Shown piece by piece: positions 1-60,600 of a stretch of 64,000 bases of DNA. This DNA is from Blastocystis sp. Blastoise. Its lineage: Eukaryota > Protista > Bigyra: Opalinata. Where the stretch lies: positions 434,001 to 498,000 of the forward strand of contig JBBPEB010000026.1 in the NCBI GenBank assembly GCA_039096225.1, written 5' to 3'. Each line of letters opens with the position of its first letter. Position 1 is the first letter of the stretch. The notes beneath the pieces are model-generated. The model was not told where the DNA came from, did no database searches, and saw only the letters and a list, made by a program, of their open reading frames with translations. Made by a program: the position numbers and the translations under genes.

Positions 1-913
1 ATTAATTTGGCAACTAAAAAAGACTTGTTTAAAAAATAAATTCAGTGTCGCAATTTGTCACAACTTTGTCACAACTTTTCATTTAAACATATATTTAATT
101 AATATTTTATATAATAGAATATTTCATTATAAGAATTAAGTATCAGCAAATATATATACCAAATTTCATTTTATACAAATGAAAAGATCATATGAAATGA
201 ATTAAAGAAAGAATTCAAAATATTTTGAACAATTTTTTTCCAGTCAAAATTTTGATTTATTTACGGGATAAATCCATTTTTGACTCATTTTTGAAATTCA
301 TTTTTTTAATGACAATTCAAATTAATTTCAATTTTATTTTCTATTAATTATTTAATTATATTCAATTAAAATTATTATGTTTATCATTCATAGTATTTAA
401 TAATGAAAATTGGTTCATGAATATTGATTTTAAGCCATTTTGAACTGAATTTATTTTTATCAGCTCATCTTGTCATCTAATTAAGAATAATATATTTATA
501 ATTGACTATTAATTATCATATAGATACATATTTACATCATAATGATTCATTATATGATGTTTAATGAAGAATGTTAAAAATTGAATTTTGATGAAATGAA
601 ATTATTTGAATATATATGTTATCAATAGCTCATTATTAGTTCATTATGAAGAAATGAATCATTTTAAAAATATTTTTATACTTAATGAGCTCATTTTGTC
701 TTCAATGAAGCTTTTATGACATTCAATTCTTCACTTTTTATATTTAATAACATTATTTTGATAGTATAAAAATAATATAATACTTTAAAAATCGTTAAAA
801 GAATTAAAAAATGATTAAAATAACGATATTTATCTAATGTATTTCTCTTATGAATTTCAAAAATTTAAATTTTTAGTGTTTTAAACGCTTATTTTAGGTA
901 TTAAACTTATTAT

Positions 914-2114
914 TAGAGCGGTTCAAAAGTTGCGACAAATCGAGTTGCGACAAATTTCACAACTTGTCGCAACTTGTCGCAATTTGTCGCAACTTTTTTA
1001 ACCAACAATAATGGCGAGAGTCCCGCGATTATTTTATTAATTTGGCAACTAAAAAAGACTTGTTTAAAAAAAGAATTCAGTGTCGCAATTTGTCACAACT
1101 TTGTCACAACTTTTCATTTAAACATATATTTAATTAATATTTTATAGAATATAATATTTCATATAATGAATAAAGTAGTGATAAATATATATACCATATT
1201 TCATTTTATAAAAATGAAAAGATCATATGAAATGAATTAAAGAAAAAAATCAAAATATTTTGAACAATTTTTTTCCAGTCAAAAAATTGATTTATTTACG
1301 GGATAAAACTATTTTCGACTCATTTTTGAAATTGTATTTTTTAATGACAATTCAAATGAATTTCAATTTTATTTTCTACTAATTATTTATCCATTTTCAA
1401 TTGAAATCATAGTTTACATTATTTATAGTATTTGATAATGTGAATGATTTCATGAATAGATTGATTTTAGATCTTTTTGAAATGATTTATTTTTTATCAA
1501 CTCATTTTATCATCTAATTAAGATTATTATAATTACAATTAACTCTTATTTATAATATAGATACATATTTACATCATAATAATTCATTATATGATGTTAA
1601 TTGAAGACTGTTAAAAATTGAATTTTGATGAAATGAAATTATTTGAATATATATGTATTCAATATCTTATTAAAGACTCATACGAAAGAAATGAATCAAT
1701 TTTTTAAATATATTATGCTTAATGAGCTCATTTTATCTTCAATGAAGCTTTTATGACATTCAATTTTTCACTTTTTATATTTAATAACATTATTCTTATA
1801 ATATAAAAATAATATAATACTTTAAAAATCGTTAAAAGAATTAAAAAATGATTAAAATAAGTATATTTATCTAATGAATTTTTCTTATGAATTTCAAAAA
1901 TTTCATTTTTTTAGTGTTTAAAACGCTTATTTTGTGTATTAAACTTATTATTAATTTATTTAAAAATTATTTATGTAATCATCATGAAAATATCTTTATA
2001 ATTATATATTTAAATATATTTTATAATAAATATATGACTTACAAATGAGATATAAAAAGTGTCGCAACTGTCTTAACTTGTCGCAACTTTTGTCGCAACT
2101 TTTGAACCGCTCTA
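914..2114 (+). mobile_element. Full-length 1201-bp non-autonomous element with 26-bp perfect TIRs
   Basis: TAGAGCGGTTCAAAAGTTGCGACAAA at 914-939, with its reverse complement ending at 2114. Subterminal TTGTCGCAAC-type repeats at both ends. TAGAG fits the hAT terminal consensus YARNG. No matching TSD seen at its own flanks. Confidence 0.85.
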
Positions 2115-2413
2115 TCTATGACATTCAATTTTTCACTTTTTATATTTAATAACATTATTCTTATAATATAAAAATAATATAATATTTTAAAAATCGTTAA
2201 AAGATTGTTAAAATGATTAAAATAACGATATTTATAGAATAAATTTGACTTTAAAAATTCAATTTTTAGTGTTTAAAACGCTTATTAAGAGTATTAAACT
2301 TATTTTTAATTCATTTAAAAATTATTTATGTAATCATCATGTAAATCTCTCTATAATCACATATTTAAATTTATTATATAATAAATATATGGCTTACAAA
2401 TGAGATATAAAAA

Positions 2414-2525
2414 GTGTCGCAACTTGTCACAACTTGTCGCAACTTTGTCGCAACTTTTGTCGCAACTTGTCGCAACTTTTGTCGCAACTTGTCGCAACTT
2501 TTGTCCCAACTTTTGAACCGCTCTA
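2414..2525 (+). repeat. Subterminal tandem array of 10-12-bp GTCGCAACT(2-4) units (candidate transposase-binding sites)
   Basis: Variable-copy arrays precede each right end (also about 2060-2114, 4355-4443, 4514-4623, 5376-5464). The left end carries the motif in both orientations. Confidence 0.8.
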
Positions 2526-5500
2526 GTTTTAAACACTAAAAAAATGAAATTTTTGAAATTCATAAGAAAAATTCATTAGATAAATATACTTATTTTAATC
2601 ATTTTTTAATTCTTTTAACGATTTTTAAAGTATTATATTATTTTTATATTATAAGAATAATGTTATTAAATATAAAAAGTGAAAAATTGAATGTCATAAA
2701 AGCTTCATTGAAGATAAAATGAGCTCATTAAGCATAATATATTTAAAAAATTGATTCATTTCTTTCGTATGAGTCTTTAATAAGATATTGAATACATATA
2801 TATTCAAATAATTTCATTTCATCAAAATTCAATTTTTAACAGTCTTCAATTAACATCATATAATGAATTATTATGATGTAAATATGTATCTATATTATAA
2901 ATAAGAGTTAATTGTAATTATAATAATCTTAATTAGATGATAAAATGAGTTGATAAAAAATAAATCATTTCAAAAAGATCTAAAATCAATCTATTCATGA
3001 AATCATTCACATTATCAAATACTATAAATAATGTAAACTATGATTTCAATTGAAAATGGATAAATAATTAGTAGAAAATAAAATTGAAATTCATTTGAAT
3101 TGTCATTAAAAAATACAATTTCAAAAATGAGTCGAAAATAGTTTTATCCCGTAAATAAATCAATTTTTTGACTGGAAAAAAATTGTTCAAAATATTTTGA
3201 TTTTTTTCTTTAATTCATTTCATATGATCTTTTCATTTTTATAAAATGAAATATGGTATATATATTTATCACTACTTTATTCATTATATGAAATATTATA
3301 TTCTATAAAATATTAATTAAATATATGTTTAAATGAAAAGTTGTGACAAAGTTGTGACAAATTGCGACACTGAATTCTTTTTTTAAACAAGTCTTTTTTA
3401 GTTGCCAAATTAATAAAATAATCGCGGGACTCTCGCCATTATTGTTGGTTAAAAAAGTTGCGACAAATTGCGACAAGTTGCGACAAGTTGTGAAATTTGT
3501 CGCAACTCGATTTGTCGCAACTTTTGAACCGCTCTATTAATTGAAGACTGTTAAAAATTGAATTTTGATGAAATGAAATTATTTGAATATATATGTATTC
3601 AATATCTTATTAAAGACTCATACGAAAGAAATGAATCAATTTTTTAAATATATTATGCTTAATGAGCTCATTTTATCTTCAATGAAGCTTTTATGACATT
3701 CAATTTTTCACTTTTTATATTTAATAACATTATTCTTATAATATAAAAATAATATAATACTTTAAAAATCGTTAAAAGAATTAAAAAATGATTAAAATAA
3801 GTATATTTATCTAATGAATTTTTCTTATGAATTTCAAAAATTTCATTTTTTTAGTGTTTAAAACGCTTATTTTAGGTATTAAACTTATTATTAATTTATT
3901 TAAAAATTATTTATGTAATCATCATGAGAATATCTTTATAATTATATATTTAAATATATTATATAATAAATATATGACTTACAAATGAGATATAAAAAGT
4001 ATCACAACTGTCTTAACTTGTCTTCACTTTTGTCGCAACTTTTGAACCGCTCTATCTATGACATTCAATTTTTCACTTTTTATATTTAATAACATTATTC
4101 TTATAATATAAAAATAATATAATATTTTAAAAATCGTTAAAAGATTGTTAAAATGATTAAAATAACGATATTTATAGAATAAATTTGACTTTAAAAATTC
4201 AATTTTTAGTGTTTAAAACGCTTATTAAGAGTATTAAACTTATTTTTAATTCATTTAAAAATTATTTATGTAATCATCATGTAAATCTCTCTATAATCAC
4301 ATATTTAAATTTATTATATAATAAATATATGGCTTACAAATGAGATATAAAAAGTGTCGCAACTTGTCACAACTTGTCGCAACTTTGTCGCAACTTTTGT
4401 CGCAACTTGTCGCAACTTTTGTCGCAACTTTTGAACCGCTCTAATCTCTTTATAATTATATATATAAATTTATTATATAATAAATATATGGCTTACAAAT
4501 GAGATATAAAAAGTGTCGCAACTTGTCGCAACTTGTCGCAACTTTGTCGCAACTTGTCGCAACTTTTTCGCAACTTTTGTCGCAACTTGTCGCAACTTTT
4601 GTCGCAACTTTTGAACCGCTCTAAATTGAATTGTCTTTAAAAAATGAATTTAAAAAATGAGTCAAAAATAGTTTCATCCCGTAAATAAATCAAACTTTTG
4701 ACTGTAAAAAAATTGTTCAAAATATTTTGAATTCTTTCTTGAATTCATTTCATATGATCTTTTCATTTTTATAAAATGAATTTTGGTATATATATTTGCC
4801 GATACTTAATTCTTATAATGAAATATTCTCTTATATAAAATATTAATTAAATAAATGTTTAAATGAAAAGTTGTGACAAAGTTGTGACAAATTGCGACAC
4901 TGAATTTATTTTTTAAACAAGTCTTTTTTAATTGCCAAATTAATAAAATAATCACGGTACTCTCGCCATTATTAATGGTAAAAAAAGTTGCGACAAATTG
5001 CGACAAGTTGCGACAAGTTGTGAAATTTGTCGCAACTCGATTTGTCGCAACTTTTGAACCGCTCTAACCGCTCTATCTATGACATTCAATTTTTCACTTT
5101 TTATATTTAATAACATTATTCTTATAATATAAAAATAATGTAATATTTTAAAAATCGTTAAAAGATTGTTAAAATGATTAAAATAACGATATTTATAGAA
5201 TAAATTTGACTTTAAAAATTCAATTTTTAGTGTTTAAAACGCTTATTTTAGGTATTAAACTTATTTTTAATTCATTTAAAAATTATTTATGTAATCATCA
5301 TGTAAATCTCTTTATAATTATATATATAAATTTATTATATAATAAATATATGGCTTACAAATGAGATATAAAAAGTGTCGCAACTTGTCGCAACTTGTCG
5401 CAACTTTTTCGCAACTTTTGTCGCAACTTGTCGCAACTTTTGTCGCAACTTTTGAACCGCTCTAATAATAATAATTTTCATTTACATATATAAAATTTAA

Positions 5501-13012: not shown

Positions 13013-24491
<11,479 letters not shown>

Positions 24492-56320: not shown

Positions 56321-57529
56321 TTATAACGGTGTTGAATCTAGAATATGAAAATTGCTAGAATTATGATAATAACTACTATTATTATTAAAATGAAAACTAG
56401 ATGACGAACTACTTATATCTCCATCTCCATCACTTTCTGTATAACTCTCCATATTCCCGTGGTTATTTTCAATATCTAATGGAGAATAAAATGATATATC
56501 ACCTTTAGGAGCAGGAAAATGCTATATAGTATTATGTGATATATATATTATTTTGTTATATATAGTATTATATGATAAAAATATATTTATGTTATATATA
56601 TTATTATTATGTTATGAATATTAAAAATATAATAATATTAATATGATTTTAATAAACATAAAAATATCTATATAGAATAAATTAACTATATATATATACT
56701 TTATCCAGTACATTTTTAATAAATCGATCTCTGTACAGAATGGGGGATACGCACGAAACGCCAACTTTATCTTTATGTAATAAACGAGTCTTTGCAAAAT
56801 ATTCACATTTCTTTTTTAAATTATATTCTTGGAAAATATCAATAATCCCAATAAAATAACGAGATTCCCGTGATTTTGATAAGAAGGACTAGAATGAGAT
56901 AGATTATAATAAACGATATCAATAAGAATAGGAATGGTTAGAGTATTATATATATGTAAATACAGTTTCATTTTTACAAAAAATATGTTTATCTTCTTCC
57001 TCTGAAAGTATTGAATTCCCGCGGTTATTTGACGAAATTGGAAGAGCTGTAAAAGAATCGAGTTCAATTGATACAGCATCGGATCCTTCTTTTGCATTTG
57101 ACGGATTCCCGCGGTTATTCTCATCTTCAGAAAGAAGAGATGTATATAAATCATTTTTCTTCTTCTTTCTATAAATAATAATATTTATTTGCAATATATA
57201 AATATATACATTGGTTGCTTGGAAAAGAATTTTGGTAAGGAACTATATATACATATATATTAATAATAATAATACATAGATTATATACAATTGAAAAAAT
57301 GGTTTATGACTTATTGCAGCGCTATCCCCGCGGTTATTTGCTTGCGAGGTTTGATAAGTCATCCATACTTTTCGAAGAAAATCATCTTTATGAGAATATG
57401 AATATATACCTATATATTATTATTATTATTATTATTATTAGTGTTATTATTATTATTATTATATATATATATACCAACAAGGAGTGAATAATCCATAATC
57501 TCATGTGACATTAAAAAGATGGTCTATAT

Positions 57530-57593
<64 letters not shown>

Positions 57594-57673
57594 TTATACA
57601 TCTTGTTCAATTTGTTTATACATATATAAAACATCTTCTTCATCGATATCTATATATTGATCCATATCTTGAT

Positions 57674-57722
<49 letters not shown>

Positions 57723-57786
57723 TTTATAAGTAACATCAGGAACATGCTTATTTAAAGGAGAAAAAGAACAATCTAATGGCTGATCA

Positions 57787-57838
<52 letters not shown>

Positions 57839-57911
57839 TAAATTCTTGATCACAATAAATACATAAATATGAAGTGGATTTCAACGATGCTTTTCTATCT
57901 ACATAACTACC

Positions 57912-57985
<74 letters not shown>

Positions 57986-58021
57986 TTTTAAATCATATTT
58001 CTCTGGAACTAACGTTATGCC

Positions 58022-58061
<40 letters not shown>

Positions 58062-58555
58062 TCTGATTTTGAAAGCATAGAAAATTATTCATTACAATAA
58101 CATCAATTTCTTCTCCATATCTATATATATATATAATAATAATAATAATAATAAGAAAACATAAAAATCATAATTATATACAAATTAATTGAATAGAGAC
58201 CAAATATTCTTGTTATATATGTATATTTATTTTGAGATATATAAATTAAATAATATTCTAATAATGACCTATATATATATATATAAACTAATTATATAAA
58301 TACAAAAACTTTCGTTTATCTGATTTTTTTATAGTTTTCACAACATAGCGATGATCACGGGAATAATAGATAAAAGCACCACTTTCTTGCATTTTTTCAT
58401 TGGAATAATGAGTAATAGCTTCTTTATATTCTTTAGCATTTATTTCATAATAAGAACGTATATATGCAAATATCTATATATAAGGGTATACTTATATATA
58501 TAGGTTAATATACTTTTGGCGCGTAATCATAAAATATAATTCTTGTGTCTGAACC

Positions 58556-58601
<46 letters not shown>

Positions 58602-60600
58602 CTTTTGTAATCTCTATTTTTTTAACTTCAGTATAATCCATATTTGAATATAAAATTCCCGCAGGAATAATTGATAAGCATGCCTTTATAATAAATAATA
58701 TATAATACTAAATTAATTTATATATATATATATATATATACATCAATTCCTTTAGCTATATAAAAAAGTAATTCATCTCGTAAAAATGACATATAATCAC
58801 GGGAATCATTTGTTTCTGAAGGCTAATAAATATAATATATAAATAATATAAATAATATAAATAATATAAATAATAACAAATATAATAACTAAAATAAATA
58901 AATAAATAAATAATAATAAATCTATACATACCTTAAAAATCCATATAGTTAAGAAATAGGTTAAAAACGTCAGAAATCCTTTTAAGCCAAGAGCCACAGA
59001 TAATAGTGTTCCAAAAGAAGCCAGTTTCTGGTAGTAATAGGGGGATAAAGGGATATTTTGAAGTTGATAAGTAGAGAATATAAATAGAAATGCTATGTAT
59101 ATATTATTATTATTATGAATACATGTATTATATTGATTATTATGAAGATATATTATTATATATATACATATAACAACCCAATAGAAAGTGAATGAACAAA
59201 TATATAACATTGTTGTATATATTGATTTAGACCAAGCCTATATATATATATATAATAATAATATATTTATATATATAATAAAAAAATATTTATATATTTA
59301 ATAAATATAATTCTATTAATATATATTTAAAAAATATAAATCTATTAATATATACTTTAATAAAATCATTACTTGTGCCTCCTTGTAAATATATAGTTCT
59401 GAAATTACATACAAACATAATTATATATAAAATAAGAAATGGAGCAAAAAAATACCAAACCATTTCTCTATATATAAAGTAGATAGAGTATATATAATAA
59501 TTCTCATTATTATAAATATAATATATCTAGTATATATAATAATATTCATTATTATAAGTATATAATATATAGAGTATATATAATAATATTTATTATTATA
59601 TATATACGTAGAGAATATATCTGTTCCTGTATTAAACCAACATATGCCCATGGGTGATAAATGAGTATCGTGCGATGACCATAGTACGGAAGATCCGATG
59701 ACGCAGCTTCCGAGCACGAGGAGGGGGATCTCACTGAGGGATATATGAGGGATTTAATAGAATAATAATGATAATATATATAGAATAATAATAATAACAT
59801 ATTAAATAGAATAAAATATATATAATATAATATAATAGAATAAAATATATATAATAATATATTATATAATCTAATATATATAATATAATAGAATAGAATA
59901 AAAAATATATAATATAATATATAAAATCTCTATATACACTTTGAGTACATGTTTTGAGTTAATAAATGGATTTCGAAGTGTTAAAACTAGATCTATACTT
60001 AGACATAAAAATGCGAATTCAGACCCAAATAATGACGTATGTGCAAAGAAGGAATACCATTGAACTATAAAGAATATAATAATTATAATAATTATAATAA
60101 TATGTTTTAAAAAATAAATTTTTTTATTATATAATATATATTAATATAAATAAAAAAAATAATATAATAATAATATAAATATTAAAAAATATATAATAAA
60201 TATAATAATAATATAAATATTAAAAAATAAGCAATATACATGATCCTGAACATCCACTTTCTAAACATCCTGGTGTAAATATAGAAGCAAGAGACATTAA
60301 AGACCAAAGTAAATCATATATTCTATAAATAATAAAGGTAATACGAATATAGAGAATAAAAAAAAAAGAAAAATAATTAAAAATAAAATAGAAATACGAT
60401 CGACAAAAAACGAGTGAATCGTTATATGAGTACACTGAAGGTTTCATCCAAACCCTGAACAGAACTACAATAGCAGAGACGACACTTACAATGCTAGAAA
60501 ACGTAAAATAAAATAAGAAAAACAAAATGAACTATAGATACTTTGTAGCCATTATCAGTGAATACTGAAAGTCTGAAACACTATAAATATCTGTACTCAT
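56321..60600 (-). CDS. GPCR-PIPK fusion: 7TM receptor domain, LRx9GI linker, phosphatidylinositol-phosphate kinase; about 24 exons
   Basis: One continuous hand-spliced frame: TM region with [14 protein letters not shown] and GICWF, linker [13 protein letters not shown] (about 58780-58745), then DYAPK|[28 protein letters not shown]|GS, MDYSLLV|[28 protein letters not shown] at 56321. Confidence 0.88.

Follow-up and report, generated by a model that had tools for sequence, protein, structure and literature searches.

The locus described here raises the question of whether stretches consisting of nothing but TA repeats between two guanosines can be true introns and, if so, how they are removed. 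The window, that is, the whole stretch of 64,000 nucleotides that was analysed, comes from Blastocystis sp. Blastoise from tortoise gut, whose genome comprises 33,340,088 bases in 34 contigs. In a database search, one exon matched KAK8797135.1 (WA158_004345) at 100%. The complete protein (774 aa) was rebuilt exactly from the minus strand (60552-56321) upon removal of 23 GT-AG introns, among them 57912-57985 and the three pure TA introns named below. The host gene (56321..60552) has 24 exons, and its product combines six N-terminal hydrophobic segments, as detected by a simple scan, with a PIP5K domain (PF01504, E 1e-57). The N-terminal multi-pass membrane region (residues 1-250, encoded by exons in 58823-60552) weakly resembles a GPCR-PIPK fusion protein (pairwise E 1e-7), and a Pfam search of these residues gave no match. 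A GC-rich near-palindrome, CCGCGG or CCACGG (often AATAACCGCGGGAA), recurs inside the exons (57019, 57109, 57328, 56457 and about 20 more places), where it encodes the repeated NNRG peptide of the kinase insert. At the other end of the window, positions 1-5500 carry 355-bp tandem repeat blocks and short TGTCGCAACTT arrays and are devoid of a long ORF.

A reading made from the sequence alone had pointed to three minus-strand introns of the kinase domain as pure TA runs, and in the assembly sequence they are indeed exact G(TA)nG: 58024..58061 (n=18, 38 nt, phase 1, after codon 424, NQ|I), 57789..57836 (n=23, 48 nt, phase 0, QEFN|YDQP) and 57675..57722 (n=23, 48 nt, phase 0, VTYK|DQD). In each of them GT and AG occur only once, at the ends. 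Taking out the TA introns restores the conserved reading frame with the junction peptides previously proposed, reproducing the GenBank protein exactly. Together with 57912-57985 they separate five minus-strand exons of 38-75 nt (58062-58120, 57986-58023, 57837-57911, 57723-57788 and 57600-57674). The yUnAy branch motif and the pyrimidine tract are typical of U2-type introns, though not universal, and both were absent from the pure introns, as was any YURAY or TNA site, in agreement with the same reading. Minor, U12-type introns are marked by an RTATCCTT donor and a TCCTTAAC branch site; since the TA introns contain no C at all, an assignment to this type was rejected.

A fourth TA intron, which that reading did not name, lies between the first two. 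If the run G(TA)35G (57914-57985) is spliced at the first AG, the frame is lost; the continuous frame KYDLK|GSYV needs the AG located 2 nt further (57912), as the GenBank protein requires. The resulting minus-strand intron, G(TA)35GAG (57912..57985, 74 nt, phase 0, KYDLK|GS), is one base from G(TA)36G, so that either a distal AG is used as acceptor or position 57914 represents a base error or an allele. With the annotated GAG acceptor, a perfect TATAG lying 2 nt upstream is passed over (57912-57916), and G at -3 occurs in only 1% of introns. Two other minus-strand introns of the same gene have related interiors, namely a near-pure one in an intermediate state, G(TA)15TT(TA)5G (58555..58598, 44 nt, phase 1), and a neighbouring (TAT)n-filled one (57524..57599) devoid of fold-back ability (MFE -2.4 kcal/mol, weaker than shuffles). 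A second cluster of predicted TA introns is situated on the minus strand at 19046..20259, with G(TA)17G at 19046-19081, G(TA)22G at 19166-19211 and G(TA)15G at 20228-20259, and is accompanied by near-pure predicted introns at 19322-19368 and 19417-19640.

The origin of these introns was addressed by comparison with an orthologue (P0017) from a relative with 36% GC, Blastocystis-like by its 30-35-nt introns. The orthologue is represented by an uninterrupted 804-aa spliced contig (L033) as well as by genomic contigs (L030-L032), with exons 99.6% identical. The support it lends to the junctions is independent of the GenBank model. This comparison verified 22 introns, most of them 30-38 nt long. 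P0017 is 61% identical to the host kinase region, without any indel across the four TA-intron junctions, and 19 of the 23 introns of the window gene, among them the four TA introns, lie at the same codon position and in the same phase as in the orthologue. The counterparts of the TA introns are ordinary sequences of 30 nt (cDNA-verified, opposite 58024..58061), 33 nt (opposite 57912..57985), 31 nt (opposite 57789..57836) and 33 nt (opposite 57675..57722). Given annotation and orthologue together, the TA stretches are very probably real introns. Since ordinary introns occupy the same positions and phases in the relative, the four TA introns are, as judged from sequence comparison, ancestral introns filled by a microsatellite and not insertions; recent gain, either from introners or by birth from microsatellites, was rejected because all four positions are occupied in the orthologue. 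The orthologue introns start with GTAT in 19 and end with TAG in all 22 cases, seven of the 22 have no internal TNAY and several lack a pyrimidine run. Weak internal signals and GTAT/TAG ends therefore predate TA filling. Orthologues were also looked for in two other tortoise strains and were not found.

The phenomenon is by no means restricted to one gene. A whole-genome census of exact G(TA)nG, a check suggested by the initial reading, gave counts at five values of n that were far above those of the reversed control G(AT)nG, i.e. 58 against 3 (n=12), 31 against 6 (n=14), 30 against 3 (n=18), 29 against 0 (n=23) and 17 against 0 (n=30). Interpolating from these five points, we estimate that about 500-600 pure runs of at least 30 nt exist genome-wide. 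In the DNA that was sampled, 34 of 44 G(TA)nG runs of at least 30 nt were called as exact introns, as opposed to none of seven shorter runs. Long TA arrays are anchored at splice sites: of 324 array ends, 197 were exactly G-T or A-G, as compared with 16 for reversed flanks.

To place the pure introns among others, we used 505 confident introns predicted by a self-trained gene finder, which recovered 22 of 23 annotated introns and had been partly seeded with them. These predictions come from about 280 kb of sequence selected for the vicinity of pure introns, and the frequencies in this sample are therefore biased upward. Flat splice models already gave GTATAT donors and ATATAG acceptors as dominant. 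The 505 predicted introns have the donor consensus GTATATAT (+3A 0.99, +4T 0.91, +5A 0.72, +6T 0.89) and the acceptor consensus ATATAG (-5T 0.90, -4A 0.79, -3T 0.95), and their length has a 1st percentile of 33 nt and a median of 83. Near-pure introns form a graded series, in which forms with one to three interruptions were as common as pure ones after removal of the bait set, and other introns are filled with (TAT)n, (TATT)n or (TATTA)n. No positional enrichment of a branch motif was detected in 383 other introns: TNAY keeps a level frequency of about 0.10-0.15 in the 3' region, with no peak near the 3' end, and is equally frequent on the 5' side. Among 480 impure introns, 25 were free of TNA over the final 40 nt. 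A minority of the 505 introns showed enrichment of TTCCC or TTTCC 8-32 nt before the acceptor, a residual signal resembling a pyrimidine tract. The pure introns had been put forward as a possible separate, minimal class. They rather mark the far end of a continuum that takes in most introns of this genome, and are as such an extreme variant of short U2-type introns and not a new class.

Two cases illustrate how such introns behave in related copies. In a pair of paralogues 78-90% alike and located on two contigs, a pure intron resides at one common position, with n=18 in one copy and n=15 in the other, and the other introns of the pair have diverged inside. In addition, a 783-bp segment occurs on two contigs (L018:4499-5281; L024, minus strand, 4100-4882) with 99.7% identity and contains a zinc-ribbon, transposase-like gene that includes a pure G(TA)18G intron, from which it follows that a mobile or duplicated element can spread introns of this kind.

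We then inspected the splicing machinery, where an altered U2 had been suspected. This suspicion was not confirmed: three U2 copies read GTGTAGTA, which is canonical, and so are the 5' start of U1, ATACTTACCT, and U6, with its ACAGAGA intact. An SF1 gene scored above the cut-off, with helix-hairpin, KH and zinc-knuckle parts, and a U2AF2-like gene with RRM-RRM-UHM order was found (UHM match E 1e-15), its assignment resting on domain order and one UHM match and not on a tree. A fourth U2 copy (L004:1501-1690, corresponding to G000:C16:1279160-1279349) is the same as the others from the branch-pairing region onward, and its 5' end is unrelated, with CAGTAGTA in place of GTGTAGTA and no U6-pairing stem I region. 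This copy is probably a truncated duplicate.

The repeat itself offers a way of pairing with U2. Against GUGUAGUA of U2, (UA)n forms eight of eight pairs (five Watson-Crick and three G-U) if an adenosine bulges out between G36 and A35, at two steps' distance from the canonical bulge, and six of eight pairs in the canonical register. The (UA)n-U2 duplex is weak, at -2.1 kcal/mol, as compared with -1.8 for a weak mammalian-type site and -5.8 for the yeast consensus. As summarised in PMC5378181, the bulge position was flexible in tests with orthogonal U2. The alternate modes described there resemble the present case in that U2 pairs with TRYTRY and the bulged A is off its canonical position; the enriched modes listed, however, require an RA step ahead of the bulge, and (UA)n offers none; the register best fitting (UA)n, with the bulge after TRY, is absent from that list. 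We raise it as a tentative proposal only that several hundred G(UA)nG introns branch via this non-canonical register at alternative adenosines. The requirements of the canonical major spliceosome would then come down to GU, AG, a certain minimum length and UA repeats able to pair with U2, and the hairpin might help in early recognition.

Three other readings of the data have to be weighed against the removal of ancestral, microsatellite-filled introns by the ordinary spliceosome. The purity of the repeats might be an artefact of the assembly, in the sense that the true introns are near-pure and an interruption (TTA or TAA) constituting a normal branch site, together with the correct repeat length, was lost during base-calling or polishing. 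The tortoise strain Rus-B (33.3 Mb, 23.1% GC), which is most likely this genome, was sequenced with R9 nanopore and polished with MiSeq reads according to PMC10690189. The Blastoise assembly is thus probably based on R9 nanopore data, and base-calling of this type could affect both purity and n; the GAG end at 57912 also resembles a base error beside a repeat. However, the same assembly retains single interruptions in similar introns, 58555-58598 included, and purity is shared by divergent paralogues located on separate contigs. Moreover, a positional branch motif is missing in impure introns and TNAY is missing in the above-mentioned seven orthologue introns, which are independent data, and we regard such simplification as unlikely. 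The possibility that a lineage-specific UA-repeat-binding factor, or an altered specificity of U2AF2, SF1 or SF3B1, selects TA-rich ends, making the repeats an enhancer instead of tolerated filler, appears quite unlikely to us. It would fit the phase of TA, which stays fixed relative to the 3' splice site as far as about -28, the occurrence of a pyrimidine run of at least six in less than a quarter of introns, and the many RRM proteins encoded. The same phase locking is nevertheless expected from slippage starting at fixed TATAG ends, many introns end in (TAT)n, (TATT)n or T/C-rich sequence, and the GTAT/TAG ends are older than the TA filling. Loss of METTL16 as the cause of +4U was rejected, since a METTL16-like gene (Methyltransf_10) was found in the genome.

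The third reading, which takes up the fold-back inferred in the sequence-only reading, is that the (UA)n hairpin joins the splice sites and replaces the pyrimidine tract, allowing U2AF-independent splicing as in the fish (AC)m-(GT)n introns that set a precedent (PMC4691745). The predicted folds of -13.1 (38 nt) and -19.0 kcal/mol (48 nt) do bring the ends next to each other, TA runs are found at both ends of many introns, and the raw correlation of 5' and 3' runs (0.20, near-pure introns included) exceeded the within-gene null (p 0.02). Yet when near-pure introns were removed, the correlation fell to 0.12 against a null of 0.09 (p 0.24), and the end-duplex energy of -3.88 did not differ from the within-gene null of -3.92 (p 0.65), so that the matching of ends expected from fold-back pairing disappeared under this control. 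Pairing across exons (-4.21) was as strong as across introns (-3.97), and in 37% of introns the ends form next to no duplex. The orthologous introns at the TA positions fold at only 0 to -2.9, the adjacent (TAT)n intron does not fold, and the hairpin is forced by composition, takes in the donor GU and has no defined register (the centroid is unpaired). Fold-back as a general splicing code is already largely refuted and, as an account of these introns, very unlikely; a role of the hairpin in these particular pure introns is possible, but it is not the code.

The explanation we consider likely is that ancestral U2-type introns had their interiors replaced by a (TA)n microsatellite and are removed by the ordinary major spliceosome via short-intron definition. 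The lineage would already have had GTAT donors and TAG acceptors before TA filling. In a genome of 23% GC, GTATAT and TATAG ends could act as TA seeds kept by selection, from which replication slippage may extend arrays inward from both ends. Since both ends share an in-register direct repeat, collapse to a pure run is possible, and either inward growth or one slippage deletion could yield it. A length floor near 30 nt would persist, and the intron ends would be set by the single GU and the single AG over a short distance. U1 and then U6 would engage GUAUAU, U2AF1 would read UAG, and weak pairing of U2 with (UA)n would allow any of several adenosines to branch. The (UA)n hairpin would be a by-product in need of unwinding, not a signal. 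What speaks against this explanation is the same hairpin, which at -13 to -19 kcal/mol buries the donor and the branch region, as well as the weakness of the duplex with U2 and the absence of its best-fitting register from the enriched modes of PMC5378181. On balance, the TA introns appear to be spliced by the ordinary spliceosome. According to PMC10690189, the annotation described there favoured introns supported by RNA-seq.

Several known systems share some of these features. Blastocystis introns of the short U2 type, with a mode of 30 nt (PMC5608401, PMC10690189), are like the TA introns in their GT-AG ends, major spliceosome, common positions, length floor of about 30-33 nt and weak internal signals; the TA introns differ in their pure microsatellite interior and variable lengths. 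For tortoise strains, PMC10690189 describes longer introns and more low-complexity DNA, and repeat-only introns are not reported in the passages searched. The fish introns (PMC4691745) have simple repeats at both ends, no pyrimidine tract and pairing potential, as do the TA introns. Their repeats, however, are two different, complementary sequences found together across introns, not exons, and their splicing was shown to be U2AF2-independent, whereas here the TA repeat makes up the whole intron, splice-site bases included, and there is no matching across introns. The tiny AU-rich introns of Stentor (PMC9505925) likewise go together with canonical U1/U2/U6 motifs and no strong branch consensus, and their U-rich branch region was proposed to pair with U2 via wobble pairs. 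They measure 15-16 nt with the branch A at a fixed position, in contrast to the TA introns of 32 to more than 100 nt, in which every second base is a candidate A. An incomplete search of the literature turned up no account of introns made only of repeats, either in Blastocystis or in other protists. New in this analysis are the comparison with the orthologue, the pair of paralogues and the register of U2 pairing.

The TA introns give no pointer to a new splicing machine. If accurate reads confirm their purity, they would come close to the minimum of information that a U2 intron can have, with a dinucleotide repeat enclosed by two guanosines, and they would represent natural minimal substrates for branch-point choice without a branch motif. 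As every internal sequence cue has been removed from them, lariat mapping would directly test the choice of branch adenosine and U2 register, as well as reliance on distance alone. Finally, they would show a route from the splice-site consensus, acting as a seed for microsatellites, to longer introns, and this has a bearing on the question left open in PMC10690189 of whether the introns of tortoise Blastocystis grew or those of human strains shrank.
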